A stretch of DNA of 64,000 bases from Macrostomum lignano (GCA_002269645.1 NIVC01000020.1:1426001-1490000); one strand, 5' to 3'. Counted from the first letter of the stretch, positions 12,795-57,676 are shown. Numbers and translations are program-made. Notes: generated by a model not told the origin, from the sequence alone.

Positions 12795-13726
12795 TAGGGA
12801 TTCCAATCCCGGGATCCCGGGATCCCGGGATTGGGGCCAAAAATCCGGGATTTGAATCCCGGGATTTTTTTGGGAATCGAATCCCGGGATTTTTAATCCC
12901 GGGATTGCAAAAGACCGGGATCGGGATCCCGGGATTTCAAGGCCTTAATCCCGGGATTGGTCCGGGATTAGAACGAACTTTCAATGCCTAAATTAGATAA
13001 TTTAAAGTCTAAACGTTTATTTGAATAATAAAACATTTATTTGTTTTTGCTGTTTCTCAATGAAACGTTAAACATTTGCAAAGCTCCTGTCCTAATTGAG
13101 CTAAAAATTGTTAATGTGAACTGTAAATTATAGATAATTTTAACTTTTTTTCGTTTTCTACCACGAGACGAGACTGAGGGCCTTTTCATATTGCTTGCTC
13201 TGGTTCCAGAACAAGAACCAATTTGTGAAGTATAAACTTTTTGTCTCCATAACTAGAGGGAGATACGTGCTATAAAGTTTTTATTATTGAATGACAGTCG
13301 CCAAGAAGAAAGTGAAAAATTGTGCTAAGTGAGGCTGTTAAGGCAGTCAAATATTAACAGAGTTTAATAGTTATACTGCTGTTTTTCTTCGAATTCCGAA
13401 CCGATTCTGGTTCTGGAATTGGTAATATGAAAAGGCCCTGAGACTCTGAGAGTCGCGAGACCATGACTACTGCACGCGGCACGCCGCACAGTCCGTCTAG
13501 CAATTTAGGGATTCCAATCCCGGGATCCCGGGATCCCGGGATTGGGGCCAAAAATCCGGGATTTGAATCCCGGGATTTTTTTGGGAATCGAATCCCGGGA
13601 TTTTTAATCCCGGGATTGCAAAAGCACCGGGATTCCGGGATTTTGAATCCCGGGATTTCAACAGCATCGGGATTTCGGGACTATTCAATCCCGGGATTGT
13701 AAAATGTCGGGATTTTGGAATCCCTA
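12795..13726. mobile_element. hAT-type non-autonomous element with 8-bp target site duplication
   Basis: TIR TAGGGATTCCAA / TTGGAATCCCTA. TSD TACAGAGG at 12787-12794 and 13727-13734. The paralogous site in copy 1 (9792-9799) has a single TACAGAGG (empty site). Subterminal ATCCCGGG repeats are present. Confidence 0.85.
13178..13438. mobile_element. PIF/Harbinger (Tourist-like) MITE nested in the hAT element
   Basis: Perfect 15-bp TIR GGGCCTTTTCATATT / AATATGAAAAGGCCC, with 3-bp TSD TGA at 13175-13177 and 13439-13441. Confidence 0.75.
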
Positions 13727-17994: not shown

Positions 17995-20900
17995 ATGCCC
18001 CGAGGTGAAACCCGAAAGCGCTCCCTGCCGCCCATCGCCGAGCACGAGGCGGCGGGGCCCGGCGCTGCTAAAGTCGGCAAAATGGCCGACCAGCCTGTCG
18101 TAAGTGCGGCAAGCCTTAGGGAGAGAGTGGGGATGAGGAGGGAGCAGCTCGGTTCCGCTTAAGCGCTGGTCCGGCGGCGGCACTTTTTCTGCTTTTTTTA
18201 TCTCCTGCACGCGCAGCCTGCAGCGCAACTGCCGGAGCAGCTGCTGAATCTAATTTCCTCCCACCAGTTCCCCGGCCTCCCCAACCTGCTGCTCAGACTC
18301 GGCGCCCCGGCTAGGGGGGGGATTATCGGGCGCGCGTGACTCGGCAGGCTTGAATTATTTTTTCCTCTGCCTTTTTGCCAAGCGTTAAGTTTTGTTTGCA
18401 TCTGCTGTTTTAATCCAGTATTGCTGGGAGAGTTTGTATCAAGTGAAGCAGCAAGTTGGCGGGACAGGAGCCCTTTTGTCCTTTGCCGCCTAAGTGTCTG
18501 CTTGGCCGGGGGGAGGGAGGGGGCTGCACGAACTTGTCTAAGGGACATCTCGTATCAAAGATCGGTTCTGCTTCTCACTTAAAATTTATATTCTGTTCTG
18601 CATTTACTCTATAACTGTAACTGGAATCTTTTGTGCTTTCAATCAATTACTCTAATTTAAAAAGTAAGCTGGCCTTCGTCAAGGCCTAGCCATCTCCATC
18701 TGTTTGGTCTTTTATCTAAGACTAAGAAATTTTCTGATCTAACACTGTTTCGATCCGATTCCCTGTTTCTAGATCTGATCCCGTCTTCTAGATCTGATCC
18801 CGTCTTCTAGATCTGATCCCGTCTTCTAGATCTGATCCCCTCTTCTAGATATAACCTCTTTTAGATTTGATCCCTTCTTCTAGATCCGATCCCGTCTTAT
18901 GGATCTGATCCCGTCTTCTAGATCTGATCCCCTCTTCTAGATCTGATCCCGTCTTCTAGATCTGATCCCGTCTTCTAGATCTGATCCCGTCTTCTAGATC
19001 TGATCCCCTCTTCTAGATCTGATCCCGTCTTCTAGATCTGATCCCGTCTTCTAGATCTGATCCCCTCTTCTAGATCTGATCCCGTCTTCTAGATCTGATC
19101 CCCTCTTCTAGATCTGATCCCCTTTTCTAGATCTGATCCCCTCTTCTAGATCTGATCCCGTCTTATGGATCTGATCCCGTCTTCTAGATCTGATCCCCTC
19201 TTCTAGATCTGATCCCGTCTTCTAGATCTGATCCCGTCTTCTAGATCTGATCCCCTCTTCTAGATCTGATCCCCTCTTCTAGATCTGATCCCCTCTTCTA
19301 GATCTGATCCCCTCTTCTAGATCTGATCCCGTCTTCTAGATCTGATCCCGTCTTCTAGATCTGATCCCGTCTTCTAGATCTGATCCCGTCTTCTAGATCT
19401 GATCCCGTCTTCTAGATCTGATCCCCTCTTCTAGATCTGATCCCGTCTTCTAGATCTGATCCCGTCTTCTAGATCTGATCCCCTCTTCTAGATCTGATCC
19501 CCTCTTCTAGATCTGATCCCCTCTTCTAGATCTGATCCCCTCTTCTAGATCTGATCCCGTCTTCTAGATCTGATCCCGTCTTCTAGATCTGATCCCGTCT
19601 TCTAGATCTGATCCCCTCTTCTAGATATAACCTCTTCTAGATCTGATCCCGTCTTCTAGATCTGATCCCCTCTTCTAGATCTGATCCCGTCTTCTAGATC
19701 TGATCCCGTCTTCTAGATCTGATCCCCTCTTCTAGATCTGATCCCCTCTTCTAGATCTGATCCCCTCTTCTAGATCTGATCCCGTCTTCTAGATCTGATC
19801 CCCTCTTCTAGATCTGATCCCCTCTTCTAGATCTGATCCCCTCTTCTAGATCTGATCCCCTCTTCTAGATCTGATCCCCTCTTCTAGATCTGATCCCCTC
19901 TTCTAGATCTGATCCCCTCTTCTAGATCTGATCCCGTCTTCTAGATCTGATCCCCTTTTCTAGATCTGATCCCCTCTTCTAGATCTGATCCCGTCTTCTA
20001 GATCTGATCCCCTCTTCTAGATCTGATCCCGTCTTATAGATCTGGCTCTACCGGTATATCTTCTAGACCTTATCCTCTTATCCTCTTAACACCTGATTCC
20101 CTCTTCTAGATCCGACCGTATCGCCTGGAGCAGATACAGGTTCTCACCATATCTGGCCTTCAGATCTGACCAAAATTTAGCGTAATTTATGGCAATATCT
20201 GTTTCGAATTATTATCGAGGCAAATTTTTCGGGAGAGAGAAAATCTTATCTACCATTCAAAAGGCTTTCATTATGCCTTTTGGCGCTAAATCAGCCAATG
20301 TCAGCGCCTTAGCTTCTGTGCGAGACTGATAAAAGAGTTGCAGTTTAAATCAGTGCAGAATTGCCGATTCATTAAACTCATTTTAGAGCAGTTCTGGATA
20401 GCGGCTATATGGACTTTACCGTAATTACTAGAGGCCTGACCTAACTTGTGATTTTGTTTTGCTAATTGCGAACTTCATTGACATAGACCACATGGCTATA
20501 TAGTCTGACTCATTTCACAATTGTTTTCTCTGTCCGGTCTTTGTTCTCTGACCGATCCCGCTCTTTGTTCTCTGACCGATCCCGCTCTTTGTTCTCTAAC
20601 CGATCCCGCTCTTTGTTCTCCGACCGATCCCGCTCTCTGTTTTATGACCGATCCCGCTCTTTGTTCTCCGACCAATCCCGCTCTTTGTTCTCTGACCGAT
20701 CCCGATCTCTGTTTTATGACCGATCCCGCTCTTTGTCCTTTTTCAAGCTAGTGAATTCAAAATCTATAACAGAACTTTGAAAATTCCGCGTTGCAGGGCG
20801 GGGAGCCGCAGCAGTCGCTGCAGCCGGGCTCCGCTGCCCCGAGCTTCACCTGTAAGGCTCTCCTGCCTGACCAGAGCTTTGGAGACGTCCGGCTGAGCGA

Positions 20901-22183
20901 CTACTCGGGAAAGTACGTTGTGCTCTTTTTCTACCCGGCCGACTTCACCTTCGTGTGTCCGACCGAGATCGTGGCCTTCTCGGACCGGGCCGAGGAGTTC
21001 CGGAGGATCAACTGCGAGCTGCTGGCCTGCAGCACCGACTCGCACTTTGTGCACCTGGCCTGGACCAACACGCCGCGCCAGGACGGCGGCCTCGGCCGCG
21101 TCAGCATGCCGCTGCTGGCCGACCGCTCCCAGGCCGTCAGCCGCGCTTACGGCGTCCTCAAAGCCGACGAGGGCGTCGCCTACCGCGGCCTCTTCATCAT
21201 CAGCGACCGCGGCCTGATCCGCCAGGTGACCATCAACGACCTGCCTGTTGGTCGCTCGGTTGACGAGACGCTCCGCCTGGTGCAGGCCTTCCAGCACGCC
21301 GACAAGCACGGCGAGGTCTGCCCTGCCGGCTGGCGGCCCGGCGACCGAGCGATGAAGCCGGACCCCAGCCTCAGCAAGGAGTACTTTCAGGTGCGGCGGG
21401 TGCTATGGGGAATCTCGCTGATGGAGGGCGACTAACGAAATCTTGGCTGTTTTATCTGTAGGAAATACTGAAAATACTGTTCCACAGTTGAGTCTGAGCA
21501 CTTGAGTCTGAGTACTTTAGTCTGAGCACTTGAGTCTGAGTCCTTGAGTCTGAGTACTTGAGTCTGAGTACTCGGTTCTGAACACTTGAGTGTAAGCACT
21601 TGCTTGAGTCTGATTACTTGAGTCTGAGTACATTCTTCAGTTGATTTCTTGCTAATCGTCAGCTTAAAGATCGGTCCTAAGCTTTCCTTAGAGAGCAGCT
21701 CACGAGTACATGTTAAGAGAAATAGCAAATTGTTCTCATTTAGCTGGCCAACGTCACGACAGAATTTTTGCGCTCACCTCAACAGAATTCATCAGAGTTA
21801 TGAAAGCGCCGGATTATTCATGTGCGTCCACAGGGAGCTTGCCTAAATCTCCTCACCCTGTAATCCCTCTCGCCTGCCCTGAGTTCGAATCCTCGACACC
21901 CTACATCAACTCAAAGCCGCCGCATTGAAATTGTCGCCTTGGCATTCAGCCAGATGGCGGCGGCGGGCCGCAGCCGCCCGACAGCCCGCCCGCTGCCGTT
22001 GCCGCACCAGAAGGCGCCGCCGCCGCTCCTCCCGAAGGCGACAAGGCGGCTTCGTCATCCCAGCTGGAACCGGAAGTGAAGCCTGCCGGGTCTCGGATTT
22101 TCCCCTGGCTGGACGAGAAGGCCTACAAGGCGCACGCCTTCGCCCCCTCGCCCGGCTGCTCCTGCTGGAAGAGGCGGCACTGA
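17995..22183 (+). CDS. PRDX1: Typical 2-Cys peroxiredoxin (AhpC/Prx1 subfamily), exons 17995-18099, 20797-21390, 21950-22183 (~310 aa), with N- and C-terminal extensions
   Basis: Exon 2 has [13 protein letters not shown] (peroxidatic Cys), [12 protein letters not shown] (resolving Cys) and SKEYF. Junctions GTC|GTAAGT...TTGCAG|GGC and CAG|GTGCGG...ATTCAG|CCA are both phase 0 and give one open frame. An upstream in-frame ATG exists at 17893. The core domain is certain; exons 1 and 3 are inferred. The symbol denotes the Prx1/2-like family. Confidence 0.9.
18768..20043. repeat. Minisatellite, 19-bp unit TAGATCTGATCCC(G/C)TCTTC, in peroxiredoxin intron 1
   Basis: About 65 near-identical tandem copies seen directly. 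Confidence 0.97.
20538..20740. repeat. Minisatellite, 24-bp unit TGACCGATCCCGCTCTTTGTTCTC
   Basis: About 8 copies just upstream of the exon 2 acceptor. Confidence 0.95.
21490..21630. repeat. Degenerate TGAGTCTGAG(T/C)ACT repeat in peroxiredoxin intron 2
   Basis: About 9 imperfect copies. Confidence 0.85.
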
Positions 22184-27995: not shown

Positions 27996-30900
27996 ATGAC
28001 GATTCGGCGAGCGGCCGCTCGTCCCGCGTGGCTTCGCCGCTGGCTGCACGCGGCTGCTGGGCTGCGCCATGCGGAGGTCATCAGCGGCAACCAGCAGTTC
28101 CCCCTCATCAGCCCGCAGCAGGTGCGCCAGCTGCTGCGCCAGGGAGCCGAGCGGCACACGGCTGACGTGGCCGGCTGGCAGGTCTCCGTGCACTGCAACC
28201 AGGTGCCCTGCAACCGGCCCGTGGAGGACAGGTGACGGCTGGTCTTGGTTTCACTTGAAATTTCTTTCAATATGTGCGTCACCTGACTCAACTACCACTC
28301 GTGGGTCACCTGACTCAACTGGCACTCGTGGGTCACCTGACTCAACTGCCACTCGTGGGTCACCTGACTCAAATGCCACTCGTGGGTCACCTGACTCAAC
28401 TGCCACTCGTGGGTCACCTGACTCAACTGCCACTCGTGGGTCACCTGACTCAACTGCCACTCGTGGGTCACCTGACTCAACTGCCACTCGTGGGTCACCT
28501 GACTCAACTGCCACTCGTGGGTCACCTGACTCAACTGCCACTAGCGGGTCACCTGACTCAACTGCCACTCGTGGGTCACCTGACTCAACTGCCACTCGTG
28601 AGTCACCTGACTCAACTGCCACTCGTGGGTCACCTGACTCAACTGCCACTCGTGGGTCACCTGACTCAACTGCCACTCGTGGGTCACCTGACTCAACTGC
28701 CACTCGTGGGTCACCTGACTCAACTGCCACTCGTGGGTCACCTGACTCAACTGCCACTCGTGGGTCACCTGACTCAACTGCCACTCGTGGGTCACCTGAC
28801 TCAACTGCCACTCGTGGGTCACCTGACTCAACTGCCACTCGTGGGTCACCTGACTCGAATGCCACTAGCGGGTCACCTGACTCAACTGCCACTCGTGGGT
28901 CACCTGACTCAAATGCCACTAGCGGGTCACCTGACTCGAATGCCACTCGTGGGTCACCTGACTCAAATGCCACTAGCGGGTCACCTGACTCAACTGCCCC
29001 AATCTCCAGACTGGCCGTCAGCCGCCTGCTGATTGGGCCTCCCGTGCAGTCGCAGGACGGTCCGCTGCTTGTCGGCGTCTTCGACGGGCACGCAGGACCC
29101 GCGTGCGCGAACTCCGTGCACCTGCGCCTGCCCGACTACCTGGCCGTGGCCATGGCCGACCCGCTGCGCCTGCACGACATCAAGTTGGCCGGACAGGCCC
29201 TCAGTCTCAACATTGCCAGGCTGCCCCACGGCCCGGAACTCGAGGAGGAGCTCGGCCGGCTGCACGACCAGCAGGTGCTGCGCCTGTTGTCATAGCAACT
29301 TACTAGCAACGCTCTGTCGCTGTTCTTCATTTTTAACTACACCAGCCTGCTGGATTCTTCGCTCCCTACCGCAAATCCTGTGCTGGATTCTCCACTCCCT
29401 ACCGCAAATCCTGTGCTGGATTCTCCGCTCCCTACCGCAAATCCTGTGCTGGATTCTCCGCTCCCTACCGCAAATCCTGTGCTGGATTCTTCGCTCCCTA
29501 CCGCAAATCCTGTGCTGGATTCTCCGCTCCCTACCGCAAATCCTGTGCTGGATTCTCCGCTCCCTACCGCAAATCCTGTGCTGGATTCTCCGCTCCCTAC
29601 CGCAAATCCTGTGCTGGATTCTCCGCTCCCTACCGCAAATCCTGTGCTGGATTCTCCACTCCCTACCGCAAATCCTGTGCTGGATTCTCCGCTCCCTACC
29701 GCCCCATCCTGTGCTGGATTCTCCGCTCCCTACCGGCTCCTCGAATTCCACTCTCCCCTCTGCTTTCGCCCCTCCCCTCTTTAACCAGCCAGCCACCCGT
29801 ACCGCAGCTGTCCGCCTTCACCTCGGAGACGCTGTCCATGAGCGAGCCGGAGCCGCTCGGCCACCGCCTGCGGGAGGCCATGCAGCGCCTCGACACGGAC
29901 ATCGGCGAGGCTGCGCAGCCCCGGCCAGGCGCCGCTGGCCTCAACCGCGCGCTGCTCCGCGTGGCGCTGTCCGGCTGCGTGGGCACCGTGGCGCTGCTGG
30001 AGCCGCCCGACCGCCTCCACGTGCTGCACGTCGGCGACTGCGCCGCCGTCCTCGGCCGCTGCCACGACCAGCTGTGGTACGCGCACAAGCTCACCGAAGA
30101 GCACCGGGCCGACAATCCCGCCGAGCTCGAGCGCCTCATGCGCTCCCATCCGGTCAGCGAGCGCGACTTCCTTGTCCGCTACGACCGCCTGCTCGGCGAG
30201 CTCATGCCGCTGCGCGCGTTCGGCGACATTCGCTACAAGTGGAGCGCCGACCTGCTGCGCACCGCCGGCCGCCTGCTGCAGCTGCCCGCCACCTACAACC
30301 CCGTGCCGCAGTACTACTACACCCCGCCTTACCTCACCGCCGAGCCCGACTTCGCCACGCAGCAGGTGACCTACGCTCATGTGACCCCCTCCTCTAATGT
30401 GACCCCCTCCTCTAATGTGACCCCCTCCTCTAATGTGACCCCCTCCTCTAATGTGACCCCCTCCTCTAATGTGACCCCCTCCTCTAATGTGACCCCCTCC
30501 TCTAATGTGACCCCCTCCTCTAATGTGACCCCCTCCTCTAATGTGACCCCCTCCTCTAATGTGACCCCCTCCTCTAATGTGACCCCCTCCTCTAATGTGA
30601 CCCCCTCCGCTCATGTGACCCCCTCCTCTAATGTGACCCCCTCCTCTAATGTGAATTCCCCTCTAATGTGGTCCCCTCCGCTCATGTGACCCCCTCTAAT
30701 GTGACCCCCTGCTCTAATGTGAACCCCTCTAATGTGAGCCTCTCCGCTCATGTGACCCCCTCTAATGTGACCCCCTGCTCTAATGTGAATCCCTCCGCTC
30801 ATGTGACCCCCTCTAATGTGACCCCCTGCTCTAATGTGAATCCCTCCGCTCGTGTGACCCCCTCCTCTAAAACCCCTCCGCTCGTGACCCCTCCTCTAAT

Positions 30901-32205: not shown

Positions 32206-33784
32206 CAAGATTTCAAATTCACACCAAAAAGGCGGGTTGGCGCCGGCTCTTCGAAACGAATAAATAATCTGCTCGCTCTCCGTTGCCACCCCGGCGCTCT
32301 GGCAAGGATTTGCTAAGAAGGATTTCCCCCTTTGTGCTTCTCTGCTTTCCTGTAATTTATTTTCACGTGCTCGCTAATCTCCTTAGCTATTCGAGGCTGG
32401 AATTCTGCATCCGGCTGCCTTGAATTTTGTCTGCTTTTTAGTTGCTTTTAGAGCAGCGGAGGCACTCGGCTGATTGCCGCCCCCCGCAGAGGCCCCTGGG
32501 CCCGCACTCTGTCTGATAACTTTGCTTTATTAGCAACTTACCTAATTGCCCAACGCGGGGTCAGCTCTCTGTGTGCTCACGCTGACTCTCAGTTCTCTCA
32601 TACTGCTGGAAGTAGCCTGTCCGCTATGTTCCAGTGCCAGCCGCCTGCTAAAGTACAGATAGACATCTTCACAGCAGTCTGTAATGTGTTGCCTGCATTG
32701 CTCATGTGCGCTGCCTGTTTTATAACTGTAAGTCTGCTCTGTCCGCCTACCCGCCTGTTTGTCTCATTCATTTTTGTCTGCCGGCATGAAATTCGTAAAA
32801 TAAAAAAATGAAATATTAAAAATTCTTGTTTCTAGCTTGAAGATCCATATTTTAAATGAATAAATGCTAATTTGAGCAATAGAGTTGTCTTGACTGATTA
32901 TTTTACTAAGAGAGAGTTCATAGCCCGAGGCAAGGGTCAATTAGAGAAATCTCTCTACCCATTAGTCTGCGAGGGCTTCCCATCAGCGTCAGTTCTATTT
33001 TTTTCTGTACAGCCGGGGTCGCACCGGTTTCGGCAGGTATTGCTGCTATTCAACAGGTGCTGTGCGGCGGCACTGTGCTTTATGCTCACTCAGTTCCAAG
33101 TTGTGACGTCCAATGCAAAAATAGACACTTCAGACACTCGGCTCGGTCGTGTGCGCGAGCGCTCTTAGATGGAGCTACGCTCGAGCTGCTCGAACTGGTG
33201 TCTAAAATTAGATACTCGTAATGACTCGCAGTAAGATGACTCTGCCCAGCTGGCTGGCAGGCTCCATCACCCGCGCTGAGTCTCACTCGGGTGCTGCTGA
33301 CGCTGCAGTCACCCTGCCGGCGAGGACAGGCGCAAACTCTGCGTTTCATCGAATGACTGGGAAGGAAATTCAGGCAGTTCAGCTGAAAACGCGTCATGAT
33401 TTTTCCTGCAGAAACATGTTAATAACGTCGCTCTGCGTCAGTTGATGCTCGCGGCAACAGCGTAGTTAAAAGGCCTGAGTTTCATACAGACAACCTTTGC
33501 CTTCTCTTTTTAGTTGCACTCTGACACCGTTTGGACGGCAGCTTATAGAGGTTCGTGGGTGCAAATTTCCATGTTGAACTTCCATTTGCAGCAAAACGTT
33601 TCGGGTTGTCAGAGATGACAGGATTTGACAAAATTTTTACATTGTATTTTAAATTCATAGTGGTAGAGAAGACGAAACGGATTAGGGGAATAGTACAAGT
33701 GAGATTGTGAGTCAAATCGCAGCCTCTGCAGCTGCATCGCAGGTGTTCAAGTTTATTTTTAACTCTCCAAAACAAATATTTGAG

Positions 33785-34748
33785 TCAGCGACGTCTCCAC
33801 GAGTCCTGCGCAGCTCCCGCCCACTGCTGCCGCCCGCCCATGGTGACGTTGAGCCTGTTGTCGTCCCCGACGATGTTGAGCAGGCCTCCGTTCTGGTTCA
33901 CCCCGCCGCCGTCCAGCAGGTCGGCTTCGCTGCCGCCGGCCTCCCTCCCCAGTCTGGACCGCGGGCCGCACGCCTCGACCGTCTCGACCGTCTGCTCGGT
34001 TGGCCATCGAGTTCCAGCGGCCATTGGGCTGGTGCTCGGGCCGGCAGAGCCGCAGCTCCGGCTGGGCCGCCGACTCCGCGGTGTTGACAGTCGACGGATT
34101 CGCCCCGACGCTGCTTCTGGCCGGTGGAATCGGCATCTGCCGGAACTCCCAGAACAGCGACTTCAGCTCCGCCAGGGCGAACCGCCGCGGCTTTGTCTCA
34201 ACGCAGCTGAGCAGCTCCGCCTCCCTCTCCAGCAGCTCCTGCCGGGACTTCACTTTCCTCCGCTCCAGGAACTTCACGAGCTGCCGGTCCGTGTTGGCCG
34301 CCTTCAGCGAGTTTCTCCAGCGCTTCTTCGCCGGCTTTTCTTCGAGGGCGTCCTCCCAGCCGCCGCTGCTGTAGGCGCTCTCGCCGCGGCTCCAAAGCTT
34401 GGCGTTGTCCAGCACCTTCAGGAGCTCGTTTTGGGAGAAGCGCTGCCTCCGAGACTCGGCTCGGTCGATGATGCTCTTGCGATGCTCGACCAGCTGCTGC
34501 ACATCCGTGACCAGCTGCACCTCGATGAAGTAGTCCCGCAGGCACCTGCGCGTTTTTTGTGTTTTAAAGAAGGTCACGAGATCCTGGCTGACCGGCCGGC
34601 TGCAGATTTCCGCATAGCTGCTCTCGCCAGGGGCCCGCGGGTGTTGCGGGTTTCTGAGGCGGACTGGAGAATCGCTCAGTGCGGACATGGTCGCCGAGAT
34701 GATTCGCTGCTTGGCTACGTGCAGTTCTGAATTTATATGTTGGCTCAT
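33785..34748 (-). CDS. Cluster paralogue P1: two copies of the unknown helical domain plus a RHIM-like C-terminus behind a +1 frameshift (~34000)
   Basis: ORF 33759-34748 carries ESAYSS and two related domains. The +1 frame (33785-34024) encodes NQNGGLLNIVGDDNRLNV, matching the C-termini of P2-P4. GC3-rich codon use switches frame at GCCAAC/CGAG. It may be a pseudogene or an assembly error. Confidence 0.65.
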
Positions 34749-34940
34749 TCCGCATTATAGAGCCTCCCCCTAAAATATCTGTGACTAATAATACCCTCTA
34801 AGTGGGCTTTTGTTGTCACAATGTACAGTGCAGACTCGTGCACAATGCCCGCCAAAATTTGTATATTAAAATAGAGCTGGCAGACAGACGCGCCTCCATA
34901 GTTTTGCCCAGAACCGCCGCTTCATCCAAGCAGCTCAGAG

Positions 34941-35804
34941 ATGAGCGACGTGCGTAGGGCGATTCAGTCTTGGCAGGGCGACGAGCGGGTGAAGAAGTTC
35001 ATCGCCAATTCCTGCCCGAAGGGCGGCAGCCTCGACCAGTTCCTCAGGGATGAGAATCTGCAAAGTCTCAAAAAGAAAATTGCCAAGCAGAAAAATGCGA
35101 AATTCGCTATTAAAGATTTTGACGCGGCTGTGAACCATCTCAGGGACAGCTGGGCTGGCAAGGCGTCCGGCAGCCGAGCGGAGTCGGGCTACTACAGCGC
35201 CACCGACTCCCACTGCCGCAGCTCAGCCTCTGAAGCCAGCGCCACCCATACCGGCAGCAACGTCTCCTCTCTGGCCAACCGGCCGCTGCCGCCAGTGCCT
35301 TCAGAGAGGCGGGACTCCGACCGCAGCCACCAGACTCAGTCAGGCAGCCAGTCTGATGAGGACTCGCAGGCTGCCGGAGCTGCAGCAGCCCCAGCTGCGA
35401 CCGCGGAGCCGAGCGTCCAGCCGCCGCGGCCGCAGCCGAGACGCTCTGCAGTCAGGGTGAGTCACGATGATGCCGCGAGCAGCTCCTGCGGTGCCGCTGA
35501 GGCTGCCGAGCAGCTGGAGGCGAACTCTGAGCAGGACTCGGCTGGCAGAATCTGGGCGGGGGCCGCTGCAGTCAGAGCTCCGCAGGCCCGGCCGCGGCTC
35601 AGCCTGGCCCATCGTTCCAGCGAGACTCGCGGCGGCGATGACGCGTCCAGCCTCTCGGGACCCGCCGCCACCGCTGCGGCCCCGCCATCGAGCGGTCGGA
35701 CGCCGGTCTGCCAGAACGGCTTCTTCAACATCCACGGCGGCAAAAACGAGATCAATGTCGACCTGGAGGCTGTCAAAATGTTTAAGCGCTTCAAATCGAA
35801 ATGA
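34941..35804 (+). CDS. Cluster paralogue P2 (287 aa, intronless), unknown function
   Basis: ATG start and GC-rich codons. N-domain WQGDERVKKFI...HLR is clearly homologous to P3. Contains ESGYYS and C-terminal QNGFFNIHGGKNEINV. AATAAA follows at ~35866. Confidence 0.8.
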   Translation: MSDVRRAIQSWQGDERVKKFIANSCPKGGSLDQFLRDENLQSLKKKIAKQKNAKFAIKDFDAAVNHLRDSWAGKASGSRAESGYYSATDSHCRSSASEASATHTGSNVSSLANRPLPPVPSERRDSDRSHQTQSGSQSDEDSQAAGAAAAPAATAEPSVQPPRPQPRRSAVRVSHDDAASSSCGAAEAAEQLEANSEQDSAGRIWAGAAAVRAPQARPRLSLAHRSSETRGGDDASSLSGPAATAAAPPSSGRTPVCQNGFFNIHGGKNEINVDLEAVKMFKRFKSK

Positions 35805-36438
35805 CGACCTGTTGATTCATATTTTGCACTGCTCAATTGCTCATTTTTTCTCTGTAAAATGAAATAAAAACAATAAATCTTTTCGCGCGATATTTTTTCA
35901 AAAATATATTCGAATAACCTCATTGAAATAGTTGATCATCGTTTTTTTATTTCTGAGTTCCGAATTGGATTGTAAAGTTTCTGTTGTCCTTGCATTTCGT
36001 TAACCTTGCCGCGCCGGCGCTGGCCTTGATGCAGTAAGAGTTTGCAAAATAGTCAAGGCTATTTTTAGAAACCATTGTTGTGAACTTCAAACAGAAGAGC
36101 TAATAGTGTCTAATAGAGGCACAACCCTTTTGCTTATTAAACACTACTAAGCAAAAGGGTTGTTGCTTAAGGGTTGGTCAGCCTATGCTGACCAACCCCA
36201 AATGTCCATCCAGGCACCTGACGTCAGAGCCTCTTAGGTAGGCACTAATGTCAAGGTACTTGAGGTTTTTTATTTATTCCTGATCATTTTTTATTCCGTG
36301 TTATTGGAACTGCGCCCTCTGGCTCTGTGCTTATTATATGTAATAATATCTCACAGCCAGTCTCTAACTCGTTCCATTTTTTAGCTACTGATACACTTGT
36401 CAATGCAGTGCAGACTTGCCAGTGCTTAGTGCTCAGTC

Positions 36439-37128
36439 ATGCCCAGCCAGGTCGTCCAGGAGATCCGCTGCTGGCAGGGCGACCCAGCCGTCAAAAAGTT
36501 CATCGAGTCCGCCTGCTCGAAGTCGACCAGCCTGCAGGCGTTCTTCAGCGAGCGCAAGCATCAGCGACTATTGAAGAAGTTCCACGATCAGAAGCCGCAG
36601 AAGTTCGAGCGCAACCAGCTGCTGGATGCCCTGCAGCACCTCCGGAACTGCCTGAGTCAGCGGCAACAGCGCGAGAACGCCGCCGGAAGCGCCGCCGGAA
36701 GCGTCGCCGGAAGCGCCGCCGGAAGCGCCACTGGAAGCGCCACCGGAAGCGTCGAAACCGGCTACTGCAGCGTGAGCACCAGCTCAAGTCTTCCCTTGGA
36801 CGCGGCTGCCGACCCATCGCTCGGCGGGCCCCCGGCCTCCGTTCTCAGCCCGGTGGATCCGCAGCCGGCCGAGCCTGTCTACGACGAGCTGTACCCGCGC
36901 CGGCGGCTCCCTGCGGCGCCAGCAGATGTTGAAGCGCCGAAGCCGCGGTCTCGCGCCTCCCTGGCGACGCCTGGCGCCAATCTGGTGGGCTGCGCCTCGC
37001 CAACTCCGCCGGTGCCGGCGCCGCGAGCCTCAAGTGACGCGCGCTGGCGGCAGAGTGGCGTCATCAATATTTCTATAAAATGCCCTGTCCAGCTGCAGAC
37101 TGAGTGTTATCAAGGACGACTGAACTAA
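36439..37128 (+). CDS. Cluster paralogue P3 (229 aa, intronless), unknown function
   Basis: N-domain WQGDPAVKKFI...LQHLR, an (AAGS)n 12-bp coding repeat, ETGYCS and C-terminal QSGVINISI. Confidence 0.8.
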   Translation: MPSQVVQEIRCWQGDPAVKKFIESACSKSTSLQAFFSERKHQRLLKKFHDQKPQKFERNQLLDALQHLRNCLSQRQQRENAAGSAAGSVAGSAAGSATGSATGSVETGYCSVSTSSSLPLDAAADPSLGGPPASVLSPVDPQPAEPVYDELYPRRRLPAAPADVEAPKPRSRASLATPGANLVGCASPTPPVPAPRASSDARWRQSGVINISIKCPVQLQTECYQGRLN

Positions 37129-37583
37129 GGAGGAAGGGACACTTAAAGGAAAATATGTAGTTGACTTTCTAATCGTCAGGGCATGTGCGCTCTCTGTGTC
37201 TTGGGGAGTGTCTCTCGTGTGCGGATTGCAGGACAACCCCCGGTCAATTTTCGTGCGCGAGCCCCAAGTGAATGCGACTGTTGCTCTTGGCTTTCATATC
37301 CCTGATTTTTTAGCGAAATTAGAGTCCAATTCTGCATCATTTTGACAGCTTGTCACCTCACGGTTCGTGTAAATCAATTGTTCAAGTATAGCGGATTTTG
37401 AATTGCTATGCAGTTTCATGCGATCTTGCCTGTAGTTTTTGCAGTTCATTTTTTTCAATTTAAGCGTACTGTTGATAAGGCACTTAGTAAGCCCCCACTA
37501 GTCAGTTTCTAATTATAGACCTGTTGTGCATTTAGTAATTTGCACGAGCGCTCTCTTTTCCAGCTGTGCCAACAGCCATTGCA

Positions 37584-38489
37584 ATGAGCTCCAATGCGCT
37601 GCTTCTGATTGACATCGTCCGCGACTCGGGCGGCAACCGGGAGGCCGGGAATTTCGTCATCAAGAACTTGCCGAAGAACCTCACGGCGAAAGACTTCCTG
37701 GACAAGAACTACAGCAGGCGGCTGTCTCGTCAGTTCGAGGGCATCAAGAAACAGCCGTGCTCGCAGCGGGAGTTCCAGCAGCTCCTCGGCAAAATGAGGC
37801 GGCTCAGCCAGGCCTCAGTGAGCGGCGGCGAGCGAGACTCCGCCTACGACAGCTCGACAATTTCATCCCGCGCCTCCGGTGCCAACCAGCTGGTGGCGGC
37901 AAAGGCGGCGAAGGCGGCGGAGGCGGCGAAGGCGGCGGAGGCGGCCAAGGCGGAGGCGGCCAAGGCGGAGGCGGCCAAGGCGGAGGCGGCCAAGGCGGAG
38001 GCGGCCAAGGCGGAGGCGGCCATGGCGGAGGCGGCCAAGGCGGAGGCGGCCAAGGCGGAGGCGGCCAAGGCGGAGGCGGCCAAGGCGGAGGCGGCCAAGG
38101 CGGAGGCGGCCAAGGCGGAGGCGGCCATGGCGGAGGCGGCCAAGGCGGAGGCGGCCAAGGCGGAGGCGGCCAAGGCGGAGGCGGCCAAAGGCAACTGGGA
38201 AGCCACGCGTGTGGTGCAGCCGGCGCAGCGGCTCGGAGCTCCGCCGCCGATTCTGACGCCGGGCTCGGAGAGGCCCGGAGACGAGCCGCAGCGGTTGGCT
38301 CAGCCGCGGCTGCCCACGGTGCCACCGCAGGTGGCAGATCGGCAGCAGCCGCCGCCTCCGCCGCCGCCATCAGCACCGGCACCGCAGCCGCAGCCGCAGC
38401 CGCAAGCGATCTTCAGGCCAGGCAGAGTCAGGCAGAGCGGTGCCATCAACATCGTGGGCCACAGGACCAGCATCGCGGTGCGTGACTAA
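37584..38489 (+). CDS. Cluster paralogue P4 (~301 aa, intronless) with an (AEAAK)n repeat
   Basis: ATG at 37584 (the track start at 37566 is GTG). Diverged N-domain ending EFQQLLGKMRR, DSAYDS, about 18 AEAAK/M units, and C-terminal QSGAINIVGHRTSIAV. AATAAA follows at ~38594. Confidence 0.75.
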   Translation: MSSNALLLIDIVRDSGGNREAGNFVIKNLPKNLTAKDFLDKNYSRRLSRQFEGIKKQPCSQREFQQLLGKMRRLSQASVSGGERDSAYDSSTISSRASGANQLVAAKAAKAAEAAKAAEAAKAEAAKAEAAKAEAAKAEAAKAEAAMAEAAKAEAAKAEAAKAEAAKAEAAKAEAAKAEAAMAEAAKAEAAKAEAAKAEAAKGNWEATRVVQPAQRLGAPPPILTPGSERPGDEPQRLAQPRLPTVPPQVADRQQPPPPPPPSAPAPQPQPQPQAIFRPGRVRQSGAINIVGHRTSIAVRD

Positions 38490-49100: not shown

Positions 49101-50447
49101 TCAAACGCGAGTTCCGTTGTCGGAGTCGTCAGCGGCGTCACTGCCGGTTTTAGCGGCCGCCTGGGCGGCAGCTCCGTTGTCGCTGAGCGGCTTCAGCTCC
49201 ACTGCCTCGGGCTCGGCCTGCGGCTTCGGCTTCGCCCCGTCGGCGGCCATCAGGGAGACGCCGGCCGAGCGTTCGGTATCGGTGGCGGCGGCGGCGGCGG
49301 CAGCAGCGATGGTGACTCCGGGCCCGGTGCCGGCGTTGCTGCCCCTTCGATCGTCCTTCTGGCAGAGCTCCTTGCGAAACTGCTGGTCCTTGAAGAAGTA
49401 GATGAAGACGTTGACGCTGGAGTCGGCCAGGGACAGGATGTACGTGAGCTGCGCCGCGCGCATCTTCAGGCTCTGGTCGGGGATGCGGACGAACTTCTCC
49501 AGCAGGTAGAGGGCGGCCCGCGGCAGCTCCAGCAGGGCGAAGGCGAGAGCGAAGATGAACACCATGCGGGTGACGCGCTTGTTGCGCTCGGAGCTGCTGG
49601 CCATGGCGTTGCCGCGGTGCAGGGAGACGATGAGCACGATGGAGCTGAACAGGATCACCAGCAGCGGGATGATCTGGCTGAGCAGCGTCCAGAGCATGTT
49701 CACGGTGTTCCAGAACGGCGGCGTGCCAAGCGGCACATGCAGCAGCAGGAGGCCGCCGCCGGTCCAGCCGGTCGAGTCGCACACGTGAAACTCCGGCCGC
49801 ATGAAGTTCTGTGCGTCCTTGATGAAGGCGCGGACTCCGCCGAGGACGAGCACCACGGCCACCTTGGCGACGAACATGCCGGAGACGCGGCCGAGGCTGA
49901 AGACGCGGCTGGCGTTGACGCTGGTCCGCCGTGTGGCCACGTATGAGCGCAGCAGGGCGGTGAGGCCGACCCAGCAGTTGCGGGAGAACTGCGACAGCAC
50001 GGCCAGGTAGTTGGAGAAGCTCAGGAACAGGTAGAAGGCTGTGGCCTGAGCCCGGCCGTCGGTGGGCAGGTAGGTGGAGTAGTAGAAGTCCAGTGTGGTC
50101 GAGTTTTCGCTCAGCAGCGGGTCGAAGCCTACCCAGCGGATTCGCATGCGGTGGCTGAGCATCGCGATGCTGTACGACAGGGTGCTGCCCAGGCAGAAGG
50201 CGATCTCGCAGATCGTGAGAAAGATGAAGAACAGCAGGAAGTTGTTGCGGCCCCTGGAGTGGCTGAACACCCGCAGAAACACCACTAGGGATAGGATATT
50301 GAGCACCAGGCCGGCCAGGGCGGTGCCGATGGTGAGCAGGATCAGCTTGTCCATGGACTCCTGAGAAGCCCAGTAGGCCGTCTCATTGAGCGGCTCCCCT
50401 CTGGAGCGGTTGCCGCCAAGAACGGTGAAGCACTCGCCGGTCAGCAT
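49101..50447 (-). CDS. Orphan class A (rhodopsin-like) GPCR, peptide-receptor/Srw-like, single exon (~448 aa)
   Basis: ATG at 50447. N-terminal NRS/NET glycosylation sequons, seven hydrophobic segments, TM1 GLVLNILSL, TM5 IIPLLVI, TM6 LLELPRA, TM7 DSSVNVFIYFF, and a low-complexity C-tail. Confidence 0.88.
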   Translation of the reverse strand: MLTGECFTVLGGNRSRGEPLNETAYWASQESMDKLILLTIGTALAGLVLNILSLVVFLRVFSHSRGRNNFLLFFIFLTICEIAFCLGSTLSYSIAMLSHRMRIRWVGFDPLLSENSTTLDFYYSTYLPTDGRAQATAFYLFLSFSNYLAVLSQFSRNCWVGLTALLRSYVATRRTSVNASRVFSLGRVSGMFVAKVAVVLVLGGVRAFIKDAQNFMRPEFHVCDSTGWTGGGLLLLHVPLGTPPFWNTVNMLWTLLSQIIPLLVILFSSIVLIVSLHRGNAMASSSERNKRVTRMVFIFALAFALLELPRAALYLLEKFVRIPDQSLKMRAAQLTYILSLADSSVNVFIYFFKDQQFRKELCQKDDRRGSNAGTGPGVTIAAAAAAAATDTERSAGVSLMAADGAKPKPQAEPEAVELKPLSDNGAAAQAAAKTGSDAADDSDNGTRV

Positions 50448-52031
50448 GGCTGCAGTGCGAACTCGGGTGGTGCGGCCGGCCACTGCCACTGGCGAAGTCC
50501 TTTTTCACTGGCACGAGCGCGCAGCTCTACTGGCCTGCGCGGCCCGGCCAATAAGACCGGGGCTGCCCCCCACCCACGGGGCGGCTCTCTGACGCCGCGG
50601 TAGGCCCCGGGGAAGAGCTGAGCTGCCGGGAGCGCGATTGAAAGGAGCTCAGAGTGTGTGTGCTGTGGCAACAACTCAATTAATATGTCATTCCAAGCTT
50701 TCAGCTCGCGCACTGTTCCCACTTCATCAGTCCATATTGCGGCCCCGGCGTCCCAGCCTCGCATTTAGTCGGTGGCTGATGAGGCGACTGAGCTGGTCAG
50801 ATCCTGTTTGCCCTGAGCTGTGCGCGATTTCTCTAGACTGCCAGCAGCCCCTCCCCCCCCCCCCGGTGCGCGACAGACCGGCCGGGCAGGTGCCGGCCGA
50901 GCATAAATCACCCCTGCTCAGAGCTCACCACATCGTGTTTCCCGGCACAGCAGGCTGAGTGGGCGAGTGAGAGTGCTGCAAATTGGCTTCTCAGCTGCCG
51001 GCCTCACGCGCCCGCACTTTCAATCCGTTTCCACCTGCCCCTCCGCCGCGGGCCGGGACTCGCGCCAAGCACAGTTTCTGTCGCCGCCTTCGTGACAGGC
51101 GGGAAGTTGAATCGAATTCAGTGAGCCGAAGCAGGGGGGGGGGTGGAAGCCAGAGGCAACTGCTTCATCACGGGCTTCCCAGCCTGCTAGCCGCTACTTG
51201 GCAAGATCGATTGCGGCTGCGAGGGCTGGGGGAGGGGATAATTTTTCCAAGAAGCGCCGCTCTGAGTTTTACAAGTGAAGCCCGAGCAGTTCTTGAGCGT
51301 CACGGCAGCCGGTGTTGGAGCCCGCGCTAATTTTAGTTGAAGAGCCGGACCTCTCGCGGTTGATCCGGGATGGCGACAGCTCCGTTCCGAGTGCTCGGCT
51401 GAGCAGGTCTCAAAATCTGCTTTCAAGTCCTCCCAGCATGAAACAGTGCGGAGATCAGCCCGGGCGGGGAGCAGAGTGGGGTAGCAACTACAAAGAGAAT
51501 GCCCCTCATCCCCAAGCGGATGTTCGTGTCTTGGGGCCGCAGGTACTGCGTCCTGAGGTACCCTCTAGCGGGATCGGTGGCGGCCAGCTGCCCTGCCCGG
51601 CCTCGCAATAAATTTTACTCGCTTTAAAATTTCTGTCCAGGGGGAGGGGGATCTGCGGATCCGCGGCCAGATTGGAAGCGCCGCCTGATTTCTGCTTTGC
51701 CGGCTTTCGGGGGATTATCGACCGAGAATCAAGACATTTGTCCCGCGCGCTTTTTATCTCGCTCTCGATTTCCGCAGTTAGCGCGGCGGATGCGACAGAG
51801 AGTGTCGGCAGGAGCAGAGAAAAATTGTCGAATTCCCCAATCGGGATTTGAAAATTCCCCCCAAACTAGCCCAGAGAGTTTTGTGCAGGAAAGCGCAGAC
51901 GCATTTGACCTCAAGGCTTTCCATCTAACATGGCGAAACTAATCGTAGACAAAACTTCAGAAGATATGAGCGGCAACTGCTTCAGTATCTTCTGCAATCT
52001 CGGCTGCAGGGCTCTTTTCAGTGCCTTAGCT

Positions 52032-54627: not shown

Positions 54628-57600
54628 CTACTGCCGAGTCATCTCGCAGACCACAAGGGTCTCCAACTGCTCGCAGGCCTCCATGTCGTCTGTGAACCTC
54701 GCGTAGTCCTTCCGTCGCTCCTCCGGCGGCACGTCCGAGCCCAGGTTCACGACGCTCCGCCGGTAGACCTGCTCGAGGGGGAAGCCGGACCACTTCACCC
54801 GCTCGGCCAGGGCTTCGATGATGCTGTCCGGGACAGTGTCCGAGATGCTGTCGTCTTGAAGGTTGTAGTTCGGGCTGATGGCCGGCGGCTGCCGGTTTTT
54901 CAACACGCTGTCCACCGCCTCCATCAGGCGGTGCATGCAGCCCCCTGCCTGAGGTGTCAACGTGTCCTCGTAGCTGTTGCGGTCTTCTTCGAGGTGATAA
55001 CCGGCACAGTGCTTCACCAGGTGCGCGTTGCTTTGAAGAAAGCGCAGGTCGTCTGCGCAGCCGTTGACTTTCATGTCCTGCAGGCGGTCGCGGGCCAGCT
55101 GGCTGTCCAACAGCTGACTGCAGCTCGCCCGCTTCTTGCGCTCCCGCGCCAGCATGGACGTCAGGAGGGTGTCCAGCTCAATGGGGTACTCCTTCGGCAG
55201 CCGCGGCAGCGGGGAGTCGCCGCACACCTGCTCCTTCAGCTTGTTTGGATCGAACGGCAGTCGCATGGTGCTCATCTCAAACAGGGTGCAGCCGAGGCTC
55301 CAGACGTCGCACTTGCTGTCGTATCCTACCAAAAGGTAAGTCAGTGAGTGCATTAAAGTCAGTAGTGCTGACTCTTCTAATAATGGCTACTCCAAATTAT
55401 TATTGCTTTCCTGTTAACAGTCCGATACGATAAATATGAGGCTAGAGTTTGCAGTTTCGGGGTGCTGTGATGGCGTAAATTCTTAAGATTTGTCTCAATT
55501 GATGCTCAAGATCTGTCTCGATTGATGCTCAAGATCTGTCTCGATTGATGCTCAAGATCTGTCTCGATTGACGCTCAAGATCTGTCTCGATTGATGCTCA
55601 AGATCTGTCTCGATTGATGCTCAAGATCTGTCTCGATTGATGCTCAAGATCTGTCTCGATTGATGCTCAAGATCTGTCTCGATTGATGCTCAAGATCTGT
55701 CTCGATTGATGCTCAAGATCTGTCTCGATTGATGCTCAAGATCTGTCTCGATTGATGCTCAAGATCTGTCTCGATTGATGCTCAAGATCTGTCTTGATTG
55801 ATGCTCAAGATCTGTCTCGATTGATGCTCAAGATCTGTCTTGATTGATGCTCAAGATCTGTCTCGATTGATGCTCAAGATCTGTCTCGATTGATGCTCAA
55901 GATCTGTCTTGATTGATGCTCAAGATCTGTCTCGATTGATGCTCAAGATCTGTCTCGATCGATGCTCAAGATCTGTCTCGATCGATGCTCAAGATCTGTC
56001 TCGAGTGATGCTTAAGTGTGTCGATTGATACTCAAAATATTTTTGAGCGTGTATTTCTTGAACCGAATAGCTTTAAAAAGAACATCTGAGAAAATATTTC
56101 TAAATAACGGCTTTAAAGGTGGTTGCTGGGGAAGCTCTGATTCAGTATGCGAGGAGACCACATCCTCCTATCTCTACATTTTTACCTACCTTCGACGGGA
56201 ACATCGACAGTAGCGGTCAGGGTGCCGTTGAGGTTGCTCATGATCTCCGGGCACATGTACATCAAAGTGCCGGCCACTGTCGAGGCGTAGTCGGCCTCAC
56301 CGAGCAGCCGACGGGCGAAGCCGAAGTCTCCAATCTTAGCGGTGGCGTGCCGCTTCAAGAAGATATTCTTCGGCTTGATGTCGCGGTGGATGATTTTGTT
56401 GCTGTGCAGGTAATCCAGTCCAAGCAGCAACTGCAGGAACCAGCGAATAACGGTGTCCACGGGGAATTTCTTGTGCTTCCGGTCCAGGCCGTTGATCCAG
56501 GCGTCCAAGTCGCCGAACTCGCAGAACTCCATGACGATGCAGAAGTTCTTTTCCACTGAAAATTGATCATGGCAAATTTGGAGAAATTCTACGGCTGCTG
56601 GAAGTAATATCTGTAGCACATAAACAGTAACAAGAGTTCCGACCGCCAACAAAGCCAGCACATTGATGCTCCCCATGGTCATTACCCTTTAAGTACTGCA
56701 TGATGCGAACAACTTGCGGGTGGTCCGCCATGAGCATGATCTTCGCCTCGTGAATCCCGTCTCTCTGAATTTCAATCGTGCGACGGTTGGGCTGCGGCCG
56801 CATGACCTTCACCACGGCTTTGGCGTCCTGGCAGCGGAGGTTTTGTGCCACGAACGCGCAACCGAAAGTGCCTTTGCCGATTATTTCAATGACTTTGTAC
56901 TGCCCGTTGAGCACGTCGTTCGACAGTCCCGTATCGCGCTTCACTTCCTCCCTGCAGAAAGCGGAGATTCCTCCTCGATGCTAAAGGTCGTAACTTTTTC
57001 GAAATTTAAAACCTTTAATCAAAAGTCACTGATAAAGAAATCACCTGTGCTCCCTCTCGTCCAGCAGGGCCCTGTAGATCCGGTCACACTTGGACCGCTC
57101 CCCCGGTTCGGCCGAGGAGCGCTGGTCATAGGCGATGTCCTCGGCCGTTTTGCCGCTAGCCGTGCGGTGGGTGAGGCTCGCACCGAAGTCCAGCAGCTGG
57201 TCCACCGTCTTTGGCCGCTTGTTAGACACGGCCAGGGTGAGTGCTGTGTGGCCCCCGCGTTGGGAGGCGACTTCTAGCTCGGCCCCGTGCTGCAGCAGCA
57301 GCAGCGCCAGGGAAGTCGCCCCGCGCTTGGCCGCTTTCATCAGCGCCGTGAAGCCGGCCCGGTTGCGGAGGTTCAGGTCGCAGTTGCCCTGCAGCAGGAG
57401 GTGCTTGGATACAGCCTCGTGACCGTTCTTCACCGACATGATCAGCGCCGTGTCGCCGTTTCGTCCTGATGGCTCGTTGATTCGACAGTCGCTGCGACAG
57501 ATAAGCTCAGCCACCGCCGCCAGGTGCCCGCCCATCGCTGCCAGGTGCAGCAGATTCAGCTGGCCGCTCCCATCACACAGGTTGGAGTCTCCGCCAGCGT

Positions 57601-57676
57601 CGAGATACTCGCAGAGAGTCTTCGCATCGCCCGATCGGGCCGCCTGCAAAGCATCGTCCAGCGTCGGTCGGGACAT
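54628..57676 (-). CDS. Ankyrin-repeat / NEK-like Ser/Thr kinase fusion; exons 57676-57045, 56951-56686, 56555-56190, 55325-54628 (~653 aa)
   Basis: Exon 1 encodes about 5 ankyrin repeats (LLHLAA, TALIMSV, TALMKAA, TALTLAV). The kinase has GKGTFG, AVVK, HE, IVMEFC, HRDIKPKNIFL, KIGDFG, GTLMYMCPE, DVWSLG and ARERKKR. All three introns are GT-AG with matching phases (2,1,1), total 1962 nt. The kinase ORF alone has no ATG (the track start is GTG). Confidence 0.82.
55490..56010. repeat. Minisatellite, 23-bp unit GATGCTCAAGATCTGTCTCGATT in kinase intron 3
   Basis: About 22 copies. Confidence 0.97.

Follow-up and report, generated by a model that had tools for sequence, protein, structure and literature searches.

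A stretch of 64,000 nucleotides from the flatworm Macrostomum lignano (GCA_002269645.1, NIVC01000020.1:1426001-1490000), referred to here as the window, contains a cluster of four compact open reading frames (ORFs), P1, P2, P3 and P4, which are the subject of this study. An earlier note, made from the sequence alone, had described them as intronless paralogues composed of a helical domain, a degron-like motif, a disordered linker and a RHIM-like tail. The presence of four compact ORFs was confirmed; they run uninterrupted over 33759-34748 (P1, minus strand), 34941-35804 (P2, plus strand), 36439-37128 (P3, plus strand) and 37566-38489 (P4, plus strand). The P1 gene was placed at 33785-34688 (minus strand) and encodes two five-helix domains. 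Its start is probably M21 (MSALSD...) at 34688, because the alignment with the homologous protein P0005, described below, begins there. The frame bearing the P1 tail stops at 33785, and in the window this tail is out of frame. P2 (34941-35804, plus strand) encodes 287 amino acids (aa) and P3 (36439-37128, plus strand) 229 aa, while for P4 the ATG at 37584 is the likeliest start, giving 301 aa (37584-38489, plus strand). P1 and P2 are divergently transcribed, with 252 bp between their ATGs.

Gene models exist for P1 (P0004) and P2 (P0001), both on NIVC01000020.1 of assembly GCA_002269645.1 (Mlig_3_7). The called coding regions of both are single exons, with a gene span equal to the ORF length. 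P2 shares 76% identity with the M. lignano protein BOX15_Mlig010841g2, which bears out the flatworm origin that had been guessed from the sequence. A second locus of the same assembly, NIVC01003958.1 (L001), is a collinear copy of window positions 26.0-39.2 kb with 88-97% identity; it retains the PP2C gene upstream of the cluster, as in the window, and its P3 homologue is annotated as BOX15_Mlig010168g2. The paper on the Mlig_3_7 assembly reports 180 Mb of duplicated blocks at ≥95% identity, and its gene models were built on RNA-seq, trans-splicing and poly(A) data (PMC5730564). The identifiers Mlig010841 and Mlig010168 were also looked up for expression, and neither is mentioned in the searchable texts and supplements of published M. 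lignano papers.

Several features mark the four ORFs as genes. Read in the annotated frames, all domains, all linkers and the tails of P1, P2 and P4 have a GC content at third codon positions (GC3) of 0.69-0.90; for the P3 tail it is 0.48 (27 codons). AATAAA signals lie 2-105 nt past the stops of P1, P2 and P4. Sequences resembling splice acceptors are located ∼60 nt before the ATG of P3 and 20 nt before that of P4, the latter reading TTTTCCAG. Selection was estimated as the ratio of nonsynonymous to synonymous changes per site (pN/pS) between the window and L001, where the counts are small and the values indicative. For the N-terminal domains pN/pS was 0.07 in P3, 0.19 in P4 and 0.62 in P2, and 0.32 when P2-P4 were pooled; for the P2 linker it was 0.98, and for the pooled tails 0.60. 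GC3, the pooled domain value of 0.32, the AATAAA signals and the RNA-seq-derived gene models speak for real genes. What is firmly shown is a selected, protein-coding family of conserved modular architecture, arranged as a tandem cluster of four single-exon genes. An antisense ORF of 316 aa over P1 (33780-34730, plus strand) was dismissed as a by-product of the high sense-strand GC3. Secretion of the proteins is unlikely, as their N-termini, read by eye, carry no hydrophobic stretch resembling a signal peptide.

The N-terminal domains of P2 (34941-35165) and P3 (36439-36663), whose alignment the earlier note had pointed out, match each other in tblastn with E 1e-12 at 40-43% identity. A profile of these two aligned end-to-end with P4 (domain at 37584-37817) over 83 columns, the adjoining Ser/Tyr motif included (hhalign P 1.9e-6). 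A domain of ∼75 aa is therefore significantly common to P2, P3 and P4. P1 contains two domains of its own type, domain a at 34383-34601 (delimited by the envelope of the hidden Markov model, HMM) and domain b at 34131-34340, the latter directly preceded by a conserved KKRWRNSLK and recognized by HMM, hhalign and the alignment with and model of P0005. By hhalign, domains a and b are related (P 8.5e-5). The P1 type resembles the P2/3/4 type only weakly, with hhalign P ∼0.006 over 18-25 columns, always in the last helix, where both share the pattern (K/R)-F-(A/S)-x-x-(D/E)-(L/F). HMMs built with one subfamily left out did not cross-detect the other: the best foreign match of the P1-type HMM was P3 at E 0.82, and the P2/3/4 HMM missed P1. 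Since the P1 type was not cross-detected, the view of five copies of one domain, shared by all four proteins as had been proposed, is only partly established by sequence.

AlphaFold2 (AF2) predicted five helices in each modelled domain, with a predicted local distance difference test score (pLDDT) of 78.8 for P2 and of 83-91 for each P0005 domain (87-91 for the equivalent of P1 domain a). In every modelled domain the conserved box begins helix 5; both P1 domains are likewise predicted to comprise five helices. The M. lignano domains are basic, with an isoelectric point (pI) of 9.7-10.5 (9.8 for P2) and a net charge of +6 to +9. Among the paralogues the domains have diverged to 20-40% identity, and the linkers cannot be aligned.

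Beside the domains lies a short acidic Ser/Tyr motif. The pattern [DE][ST][GAS]Y.[SDE] matched seven times in ∼128,000 residues of the six-frame translation of the window, and five of the seven matches are in frame within the four genes: P2, P3 and P4 each have one behind the domain, and P1 has one on either side of its first domain. The copies read E-S-G-Y-Y-S in P2 (35181-35198), E-T-G-Y-C-S in P3 (36754-36771), D-S-A-Y-D-S in P4 (37836-37853) and E-S-A-Y-S-S between the P1 domains (34365-34382); the last was also recovered by alignment with P0005. A motif following the domain, written as (D/E)(S/T)(G/A)YxS in the earlier note, is thus present in all four ORFs, to which P1 adds an unforeseen E-S-S-Y-A-E upstream of its first domain (34608-34625), with the counterpart E-S-V-Y-A-S in P0005. 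In the AF2 models the motifs fall in disordered segments next to the domains. The L001 copy of P2 carries a 45-bp insertion (L001 ∼10100-10200) that duplicates the motif as E-S-G-Y-D-S.

The linkers that follow are rich in Ala, Ser and Pro and poorly conserved, as had been stated. Tandem-repeat scanning located one minisatellite in the linker of P3, with 12-bp units coding for (GSAA)n (36678-36751), and another in that of P4, with 15-bp units coding for (AAKAE)n (37916-38188); the latter array is shorter in L001 (∼13100-13300) than in the window. The linkers therefore change fast by expansion and contraction of minisatellites, so that the rapid evolution suggested for the family holds for them and not for the P3 and P4 N-domains (pN/pS 0.07 and 0.19). 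Sites of the TRAF6 type, P-x-E-x-x-(Ar/Ac), were considered as a family feature and rejected: the linkers of P2 and P3 contain them, but P1, P4 and P0005 do not.

The proteins end in a conserved tail of ∼16 residues. The six-frame translation of the window holds exactly four matches to [QN][SN]G..?[ILVF]N[IV].[GI], and every cluster gene has one of them near its 3' end. The tails read Q-N-G-G-L-L-N-I-V-G-D-D-N-R-L-N-V in P1 (33845-33895, minus strand), Q-N-G-F-F-N-I-H-G-G-K-N-E-I-N-V in P2 (35712-35759), Q-S-G-V-I-N-I-S-I-K-C-P-V-Q-L-Q in P3 (37051-37098) and Q-S-G-A-I-N-I-V-G-H-R-T-S-I-A-V in P4 (38433-38480), where the motif ends three residues before the C-terminus; for P2, P3 and P4 the assignment is also supported by alignment. 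With Phi denoting a hydrophobic residue, P1, P2, P4 and P0005 yield the consensus G-x-Phi-N-Phi-x-G-x-x-(N/T)-x-Phi-x-Phi, preceded by Q-(S/N). The conserved C-terminal motif that had been claimed is thus present in P1, P2 and P4, out of frame in the window copy of P1 and degenerate in P3, where the first half is kept. The motif lies 2-20 residues from the C-terminus, at a distance that differs among the proteins. Scored on a rough aggregation scale, every one of the five proteins has its tail among the segments of highest hydrophobicity and beta propensity downstream of the domains, and in P1, P3 and P4 the tail scores highest. AF2 leaves it disordered. A PDZ-type C-terminal signal is unlikely, as the last residues are not conserved.

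The out-of-frame tail of P1 was traced by DNA alignment to a site at 33988-34011 (minus strand; junction at ∼34000/34001), where an 8-bp deletion in the window relative to L001 shifts the frame; the alignment also shows a 9-bp duplication there. In L001 one ORF joins P1 domain b to the tail. The frame of the tail has a GC3 of 0.84, against 0.51 for the frame that leads on from the domains. These values, the in-frame L001 ORF and the in-frame tail of P0005 indicate that ancestral P1 included the tail, and the window copy is either decaying or mis-assembled. L001 carries many 1-bp deletions, which look like assembly errors, and neither copy is therefore free of error. An intron of 35 nt (GT..AG) that would restore the P1 frame is unsupported, and the segment is GC-rich.

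To find homologues, the domain profile was run with HMMER exhaustively against 1.84 billion cluster representatives. Four matched: two M. lignano copies, the spurious repeat protein P0006, and P0005. Word-index searches yielded the M. lignano copies and P0005 only. P0005 is a protein of 230 aa from the Logan assemblies of SRR30276804 and SRR30276812 and is 43% identical to P1. Its elements follow in the order E-S-V-Y-A-S, domain a, E-S-G-I-Y-D, KKRWRNSLK, domain b, a short linker and an in-frame tail, Q-S-G-L-V-N-V-C-G-Q-G-N-Q-V-A-L-T-I-T-stop, with the motif two residues from the C-terminus. The layout of helical domain, disordered linker and beta-prone tail is thus real and kept in a second protein. 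The two P0005 contigs (L002 and L003) have identical coding sequences and diverge two bases before the ATG, which suggests alternative 5' exons and hence RNA as the source. Their 3' flanks (L002 880-1000, L003 880-967) hold, by our own reading, a fragment resembling reverse transcriptase (..FDLKNAFDTVDH..), and L002 terminates in Illumina adapter sequence. The family is lineage-restricted, known so far from M. lignano and the one sequencing sample that yielded P0005.

The absence of a named family, noted before, held in every search. Neither the full proteins nor the separate domains and tails had a match in Pfam, NCBIfam or PADLOC that reached or approached the threshold, and searching PDB sequences with domain and tail profiles likewise returned nothing significant. 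Foldseek, run with both AF2 models against the PDB and with the P0005 model against BFVD, gave no match below E 0.4. The best match (E 0.4, probability 0.72) was a 492-residue chain of an E. coli transcription-translation complex that spans both P0005 domains and is not significant; judging by its length alone, we take this chain to be probably NusA, with tandem HhH-type repeats. A further match, Sla1 SHD2, had E 8. A death fold or SAM domain had been raised for the N-domain, and the AF2/Foldseek check gave no significant match to support either. The death fold (DD/CARD/PYD/DED) was rejected, with five helices in ∼70 residues here against six in ∼85-90, and no match in the Foldseek search of the PDB or in Pfam. 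The likeness to SAM and (HhH)2 domains lies in ∼70 residues with five helices, a short third and a long last one; Pfam gave no SAM or HhH match, and no HhH glycine-hairpin signature was identified. With this helix pattern and the non-significant Foldseek match, a SAM/(HhH)2-like fold may serve as a lead, and nothing more. By sequence and structure comparison, the family is undescribed in the databases searched (Pfam, NCBIfam, PADLOC, PDB, Foldseek PDB/BFVD and the 1.84 billion representatives).

The tail was compared with the motifs of known amyloid-signalling systems. The RHIM has a core tetrad (V/I)-Q-(V/I/L/C)-G within a segment of 18-20 residues (PMC13506858), and G-Phi-Q-Phi-G is the central signature common to RHIM, PP and BASS3 (10.1101/2020.01.06.895854). 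At the tetrad position the window tails read N-I-V-G, N-I-H-G or N-I-S-I, and P0005 reads N-V-C-G. Like the RHIMs of RIPK1, RIPK3, ZBP1, TRIF and viral decoys, the tail is short (∼16-20 aa), lies in a disordered region and has a Gly-bounded hydrophobic-amide-hydrophobic strand followed by x-x-N-x-Phi-x-Phi. The stretch G-x-x-N-x-Phi-x-Phi is common to the tails, RIPK1 (GAYNYMEI) and RIPK3 (GDNNYLTM), the RIPK sequences having been verified in the PDB; V-G-D-D-N-R-L-N-V of P1 compares with V-G-D-N-N-Y-L-T-M of RIPK3. The Z-alpha-Z-alpha-RHIM layout of ZBP1 also parallels the two N-terminal domains, disordered region and motif of P1. RHIM proteins, however, carry a kinase, Z-alpha or TIR domain, whereas here an all-helical domain matching no known family is attached. 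On these sequence grounds the tail bears a resemblance to the RHIM/PP/BASS3 signature and is not a member of it.

Effectors with a helical domain and a short C-terminal motif are known from the Bell/BASS and HeLo/PP systems (10.1101/2020.01.06.895854, PMC13506858). Fungal PP/HELLP and bacterial BASS3/Bell proteins combine an alpha-helical N-domain with a C-terminal pseudo-palindromic Gly/Asn-rich motif and are encoded in clusters of motif-carrying genes, as is the case here, the helices being predicted. The Bell/HeLo-like domain, in contrast, has ∼100 aa and targets membranes, while the flatworm domain has ∼70 aa and is basic; the central signature is stretched here, with Asn for Gln, and the host is an animal. 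The NLR partner that defines these systems, encoded by the adjacent gene and bearing the motif at its N-terminus, was not found in the window, where the motif is confined to the four genes. The Drosophila IMD cRHIMs (PGRP-LC/LE, Imd and Pirk) are likewise divergent invertebrate motifs off the canonical tetrad, carried by small adaptor- or regulator-like proteins; Pirk, for example, is a small inhibitor that bears its motif at the C-terminus. In sequence they are unrelated to the flatworm tails, and their core, V-x-x-G (PMC13506858), is unmatched, as Asn stands three before the Gly in all copies. The Ser/Tyr motif resembles the beta-TrCP/Slimb phosphodegron D-S-G-Phi-x-S in the spacing of acidic residue, Ser/Thr, small residue, hydrophobic residue and second Ser, as well as in its location in disordered segments; it differs in that the nearly invariant residue of the flatworm motif is Tyr.

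Taken together, the cluster may encode a lineage-restricted family of adaptors for homotypic, amyloid-like assembly, with a stretched RHIM-like core and phospho-regulated motifs. The reading, to which we assign a probability of about 0.3, draws on the architecture conserved in P0005, the confinement of the tail pattern to four genes, the beta-prone tail, the RIPK-like G-x-x-N-x-Phi-x-Phi and the layout shared with Bell/BASS and HeLo/PP effectors. Under it, the tail would be a stretched analogue of the pseudo-palindromic G-Phi-Q-Phi-G-x-x-N core, with Asn for Gln and one extra residue on each side, and would act as an element of homotypic beta-sheet (amyloid-like) assembly. The paralogues would co-assemble with each other and with a partner carrying the same motif, and assembly would cluster the basic helical domains, which might then bind an acidic ligand or effector. 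The beta-TrCP-phosphodegron-like Ser/Tyr motifs could be phosphorylated and thereby control turnover or assembly. The frameshifted window copy of P1 and P3 with its degenerate tail may be decaying, or may serve as non-assembling regulators. The stronger version, a flatworm-evolved or diverged but retained amyloid-type module of co-polymerising tandem adaptors with a new basic five-helix domain and phosphodegron-like switches, appears rather unlikely.

A number of observations weigh against amyloid-like assembly. The P3 tail matches the first half of the motif only (Q-S-G-V-I-N-I) and has lost the second Gly and the Asn, and in the window the P1 tail lies in another frame than the P1 domains. 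The pattern [IV]Q[IVLC]G..N has zero matches in the six-frame translation of the window, and the signature G-Phi-Q-Phi-G is absent, P1, P2, P4 and P0005 having G-x-Phi-N-Phi-x-G instead. The Pfam RHIM gave no hmmscan match to the four tails or the full proteins at E up to 10, where HMMER filters may drop very weak ones, and the tail profile matched nothing in the PDB. Aligned with hhalign to the RHIMs of RIPK1 and RIPK3, the tails matched in G-x-x-N only (4 columns, P 0.27), a comparison of low power, as the RIPK1 and RIPK3 RHIMs match each other at just E 0.01-1.5. The tail, called RHIM-like in the earlier note, is therefore not a canonical RHIM. No receptor or kinase carrying the tail motif was found in the window, nor an NLR, RIP-like kinase, TIR, death-fold gene or other motif-bearing ORF, the RIP-likeness of an ankyrin-kinase gene not having been examined. 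The strict form D-S-G-x-x-S of the Ser/Tyr motif has 0 copies, so that the degron reading is one of a 6-residue pattern, and the pooled tail pN/pS of 0.60 comes from few substitutions.

Several of these observations would equally fit a largely disordered scaffold built on linear motifs, in which no amyloid is formed. Here, the basic five-helix domain, possibly (HhH)2/SAM-like, would bind nucleic acid, lipid or an acidic protein, and the tail would dock as a single strand on a folded partner or on its own N-domain, or direct localisation. We regard this as about as likely as amyloid-like assembly, well possible although short of probable. It is favored by the strongly basic M. lignano domains, the probable NusA chain as best, albeit non-significant, structural match, the lack of a statistical link to RHIM and the lack of a partner NLR or kinase nearby. 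However, neither Foldseek nor Pfam supports any fold class at a significant level. Moreover, the pseudo-palindromic make-up of Gly, Asn and hydrophobic residues is typical of amyloid-signalling motifs and not of known docking motifs, and the varying distance of the motif from the C-terminus speaks against a pocket that reads the C-terminus, such as PDZ.

The genes could also be a family of young orphans, weakly constrained and in part decaying, in which the shared motifs are left over from recent tandem duplication and do not point to a specific mechanism. In the searches made the family is absent outside one genus-level lineage, pN/pS is about 1 for the linker and tail of P2, the window copy of P1 is frameshifted, the P3 tail is degenerate and low in GC3, and the linkers bear the mark of a genome-wide minisatellite instability that shows throughout the window. 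Yet the 6-residue and ∼16-residue motifs hold the same relative positions despite 20-40% domain identity and unalignable linkers, P0005 keeps every element at 43% identity, and the P3 and P4 domains show pN/pS of 0.07 and 0.19, which makes this explanation distinctly improbable. A true RHIM family signalling through RIP-type kinases in necroptosis or IMD, for which G-x-x-N-x-Phi-x-Phi after a Phi-(N/Q)-Phi strand is the sole support, is hardly credible given the absent core tetrad, the lack of a Pfam RHIM match, the non-significant hhalign result and an ankyrin-kinase gene (54.6-57.7 kb) devoid of the family tail motif.

The neighbours of the cluster in the window comprise PP2C, peroxiredoxin, a G-protein-coupled receptor, the ankyrin-kinase gene and membrane proteins. 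The peroxiredoxin ORF (20791-21435, plus strand) contains AhpC/TSA and the 1-Cys Prx C-terminal domain. The PP2C phosphatase gene (28069-30689, plus strand) has long ORFs that stay in frame through 27-bp and 33-bp minisatellites (28274-28998 and 29348-29735), with more arrays downstream. A single-exon ORF of 462 aa (49101-50489, minus strand) encodes a receptor of the rhodopsin type with weak Srw and 7tm_1 matches. The ankyrin-kinase gene (54628-57676, minus strand) starts with ankyrin repeats (57041-57676) at the N-terminus and continues with exons of a Ser/Thr kinase (56182-56682 and 54628-55353), and a 23-bp minisatellite (55485-56035) lies between its two kinase ORFs; V-V-N-L-G in its C-terminal exon was judged a chance match. 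Three single-exon paralogues at 58317-59690 (plus strand), 60569-61993 (minus strand) and 62712-63944 (minus strand), 35-57% identical and by eye of multi-pass membrane appearance, match no Pfam family at E ≤0.001 and form a second uncharacterised tandem family in the window. The density of minisatellites is extreme (43 Tandem Repeats Finder rows, periods of 10-56 bp, arrays up to 1.6 kb), and the arrays account for numerous long but spurious ORFs in several frames as well as strong local GC/AT skews.

If the tail is an assembly motif, amyloid or prion-like signalling would extend to flatworms, whose innate-immune wiring is poorly known. The logic of RHIM, PP and BASS3 would then tolerate a longer central strand and Asn in place of Gln, and broader patterns could be used in proteome searches. 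The complete module of co-polymerising tandem adaptors, if real, would be the first amyloid-type signalling module in Platyhelminthes, independent of RIP kinases and NLRs. As M. lignano is tractable for transgenesis, the assembly idea is directly testable in the animal. Should the tail not be an assembly motif, the cluster would still stand as a clean case of a lineage-restricted family, one that combines a small helical domain of a new kind with two linear motifs that are conserved.

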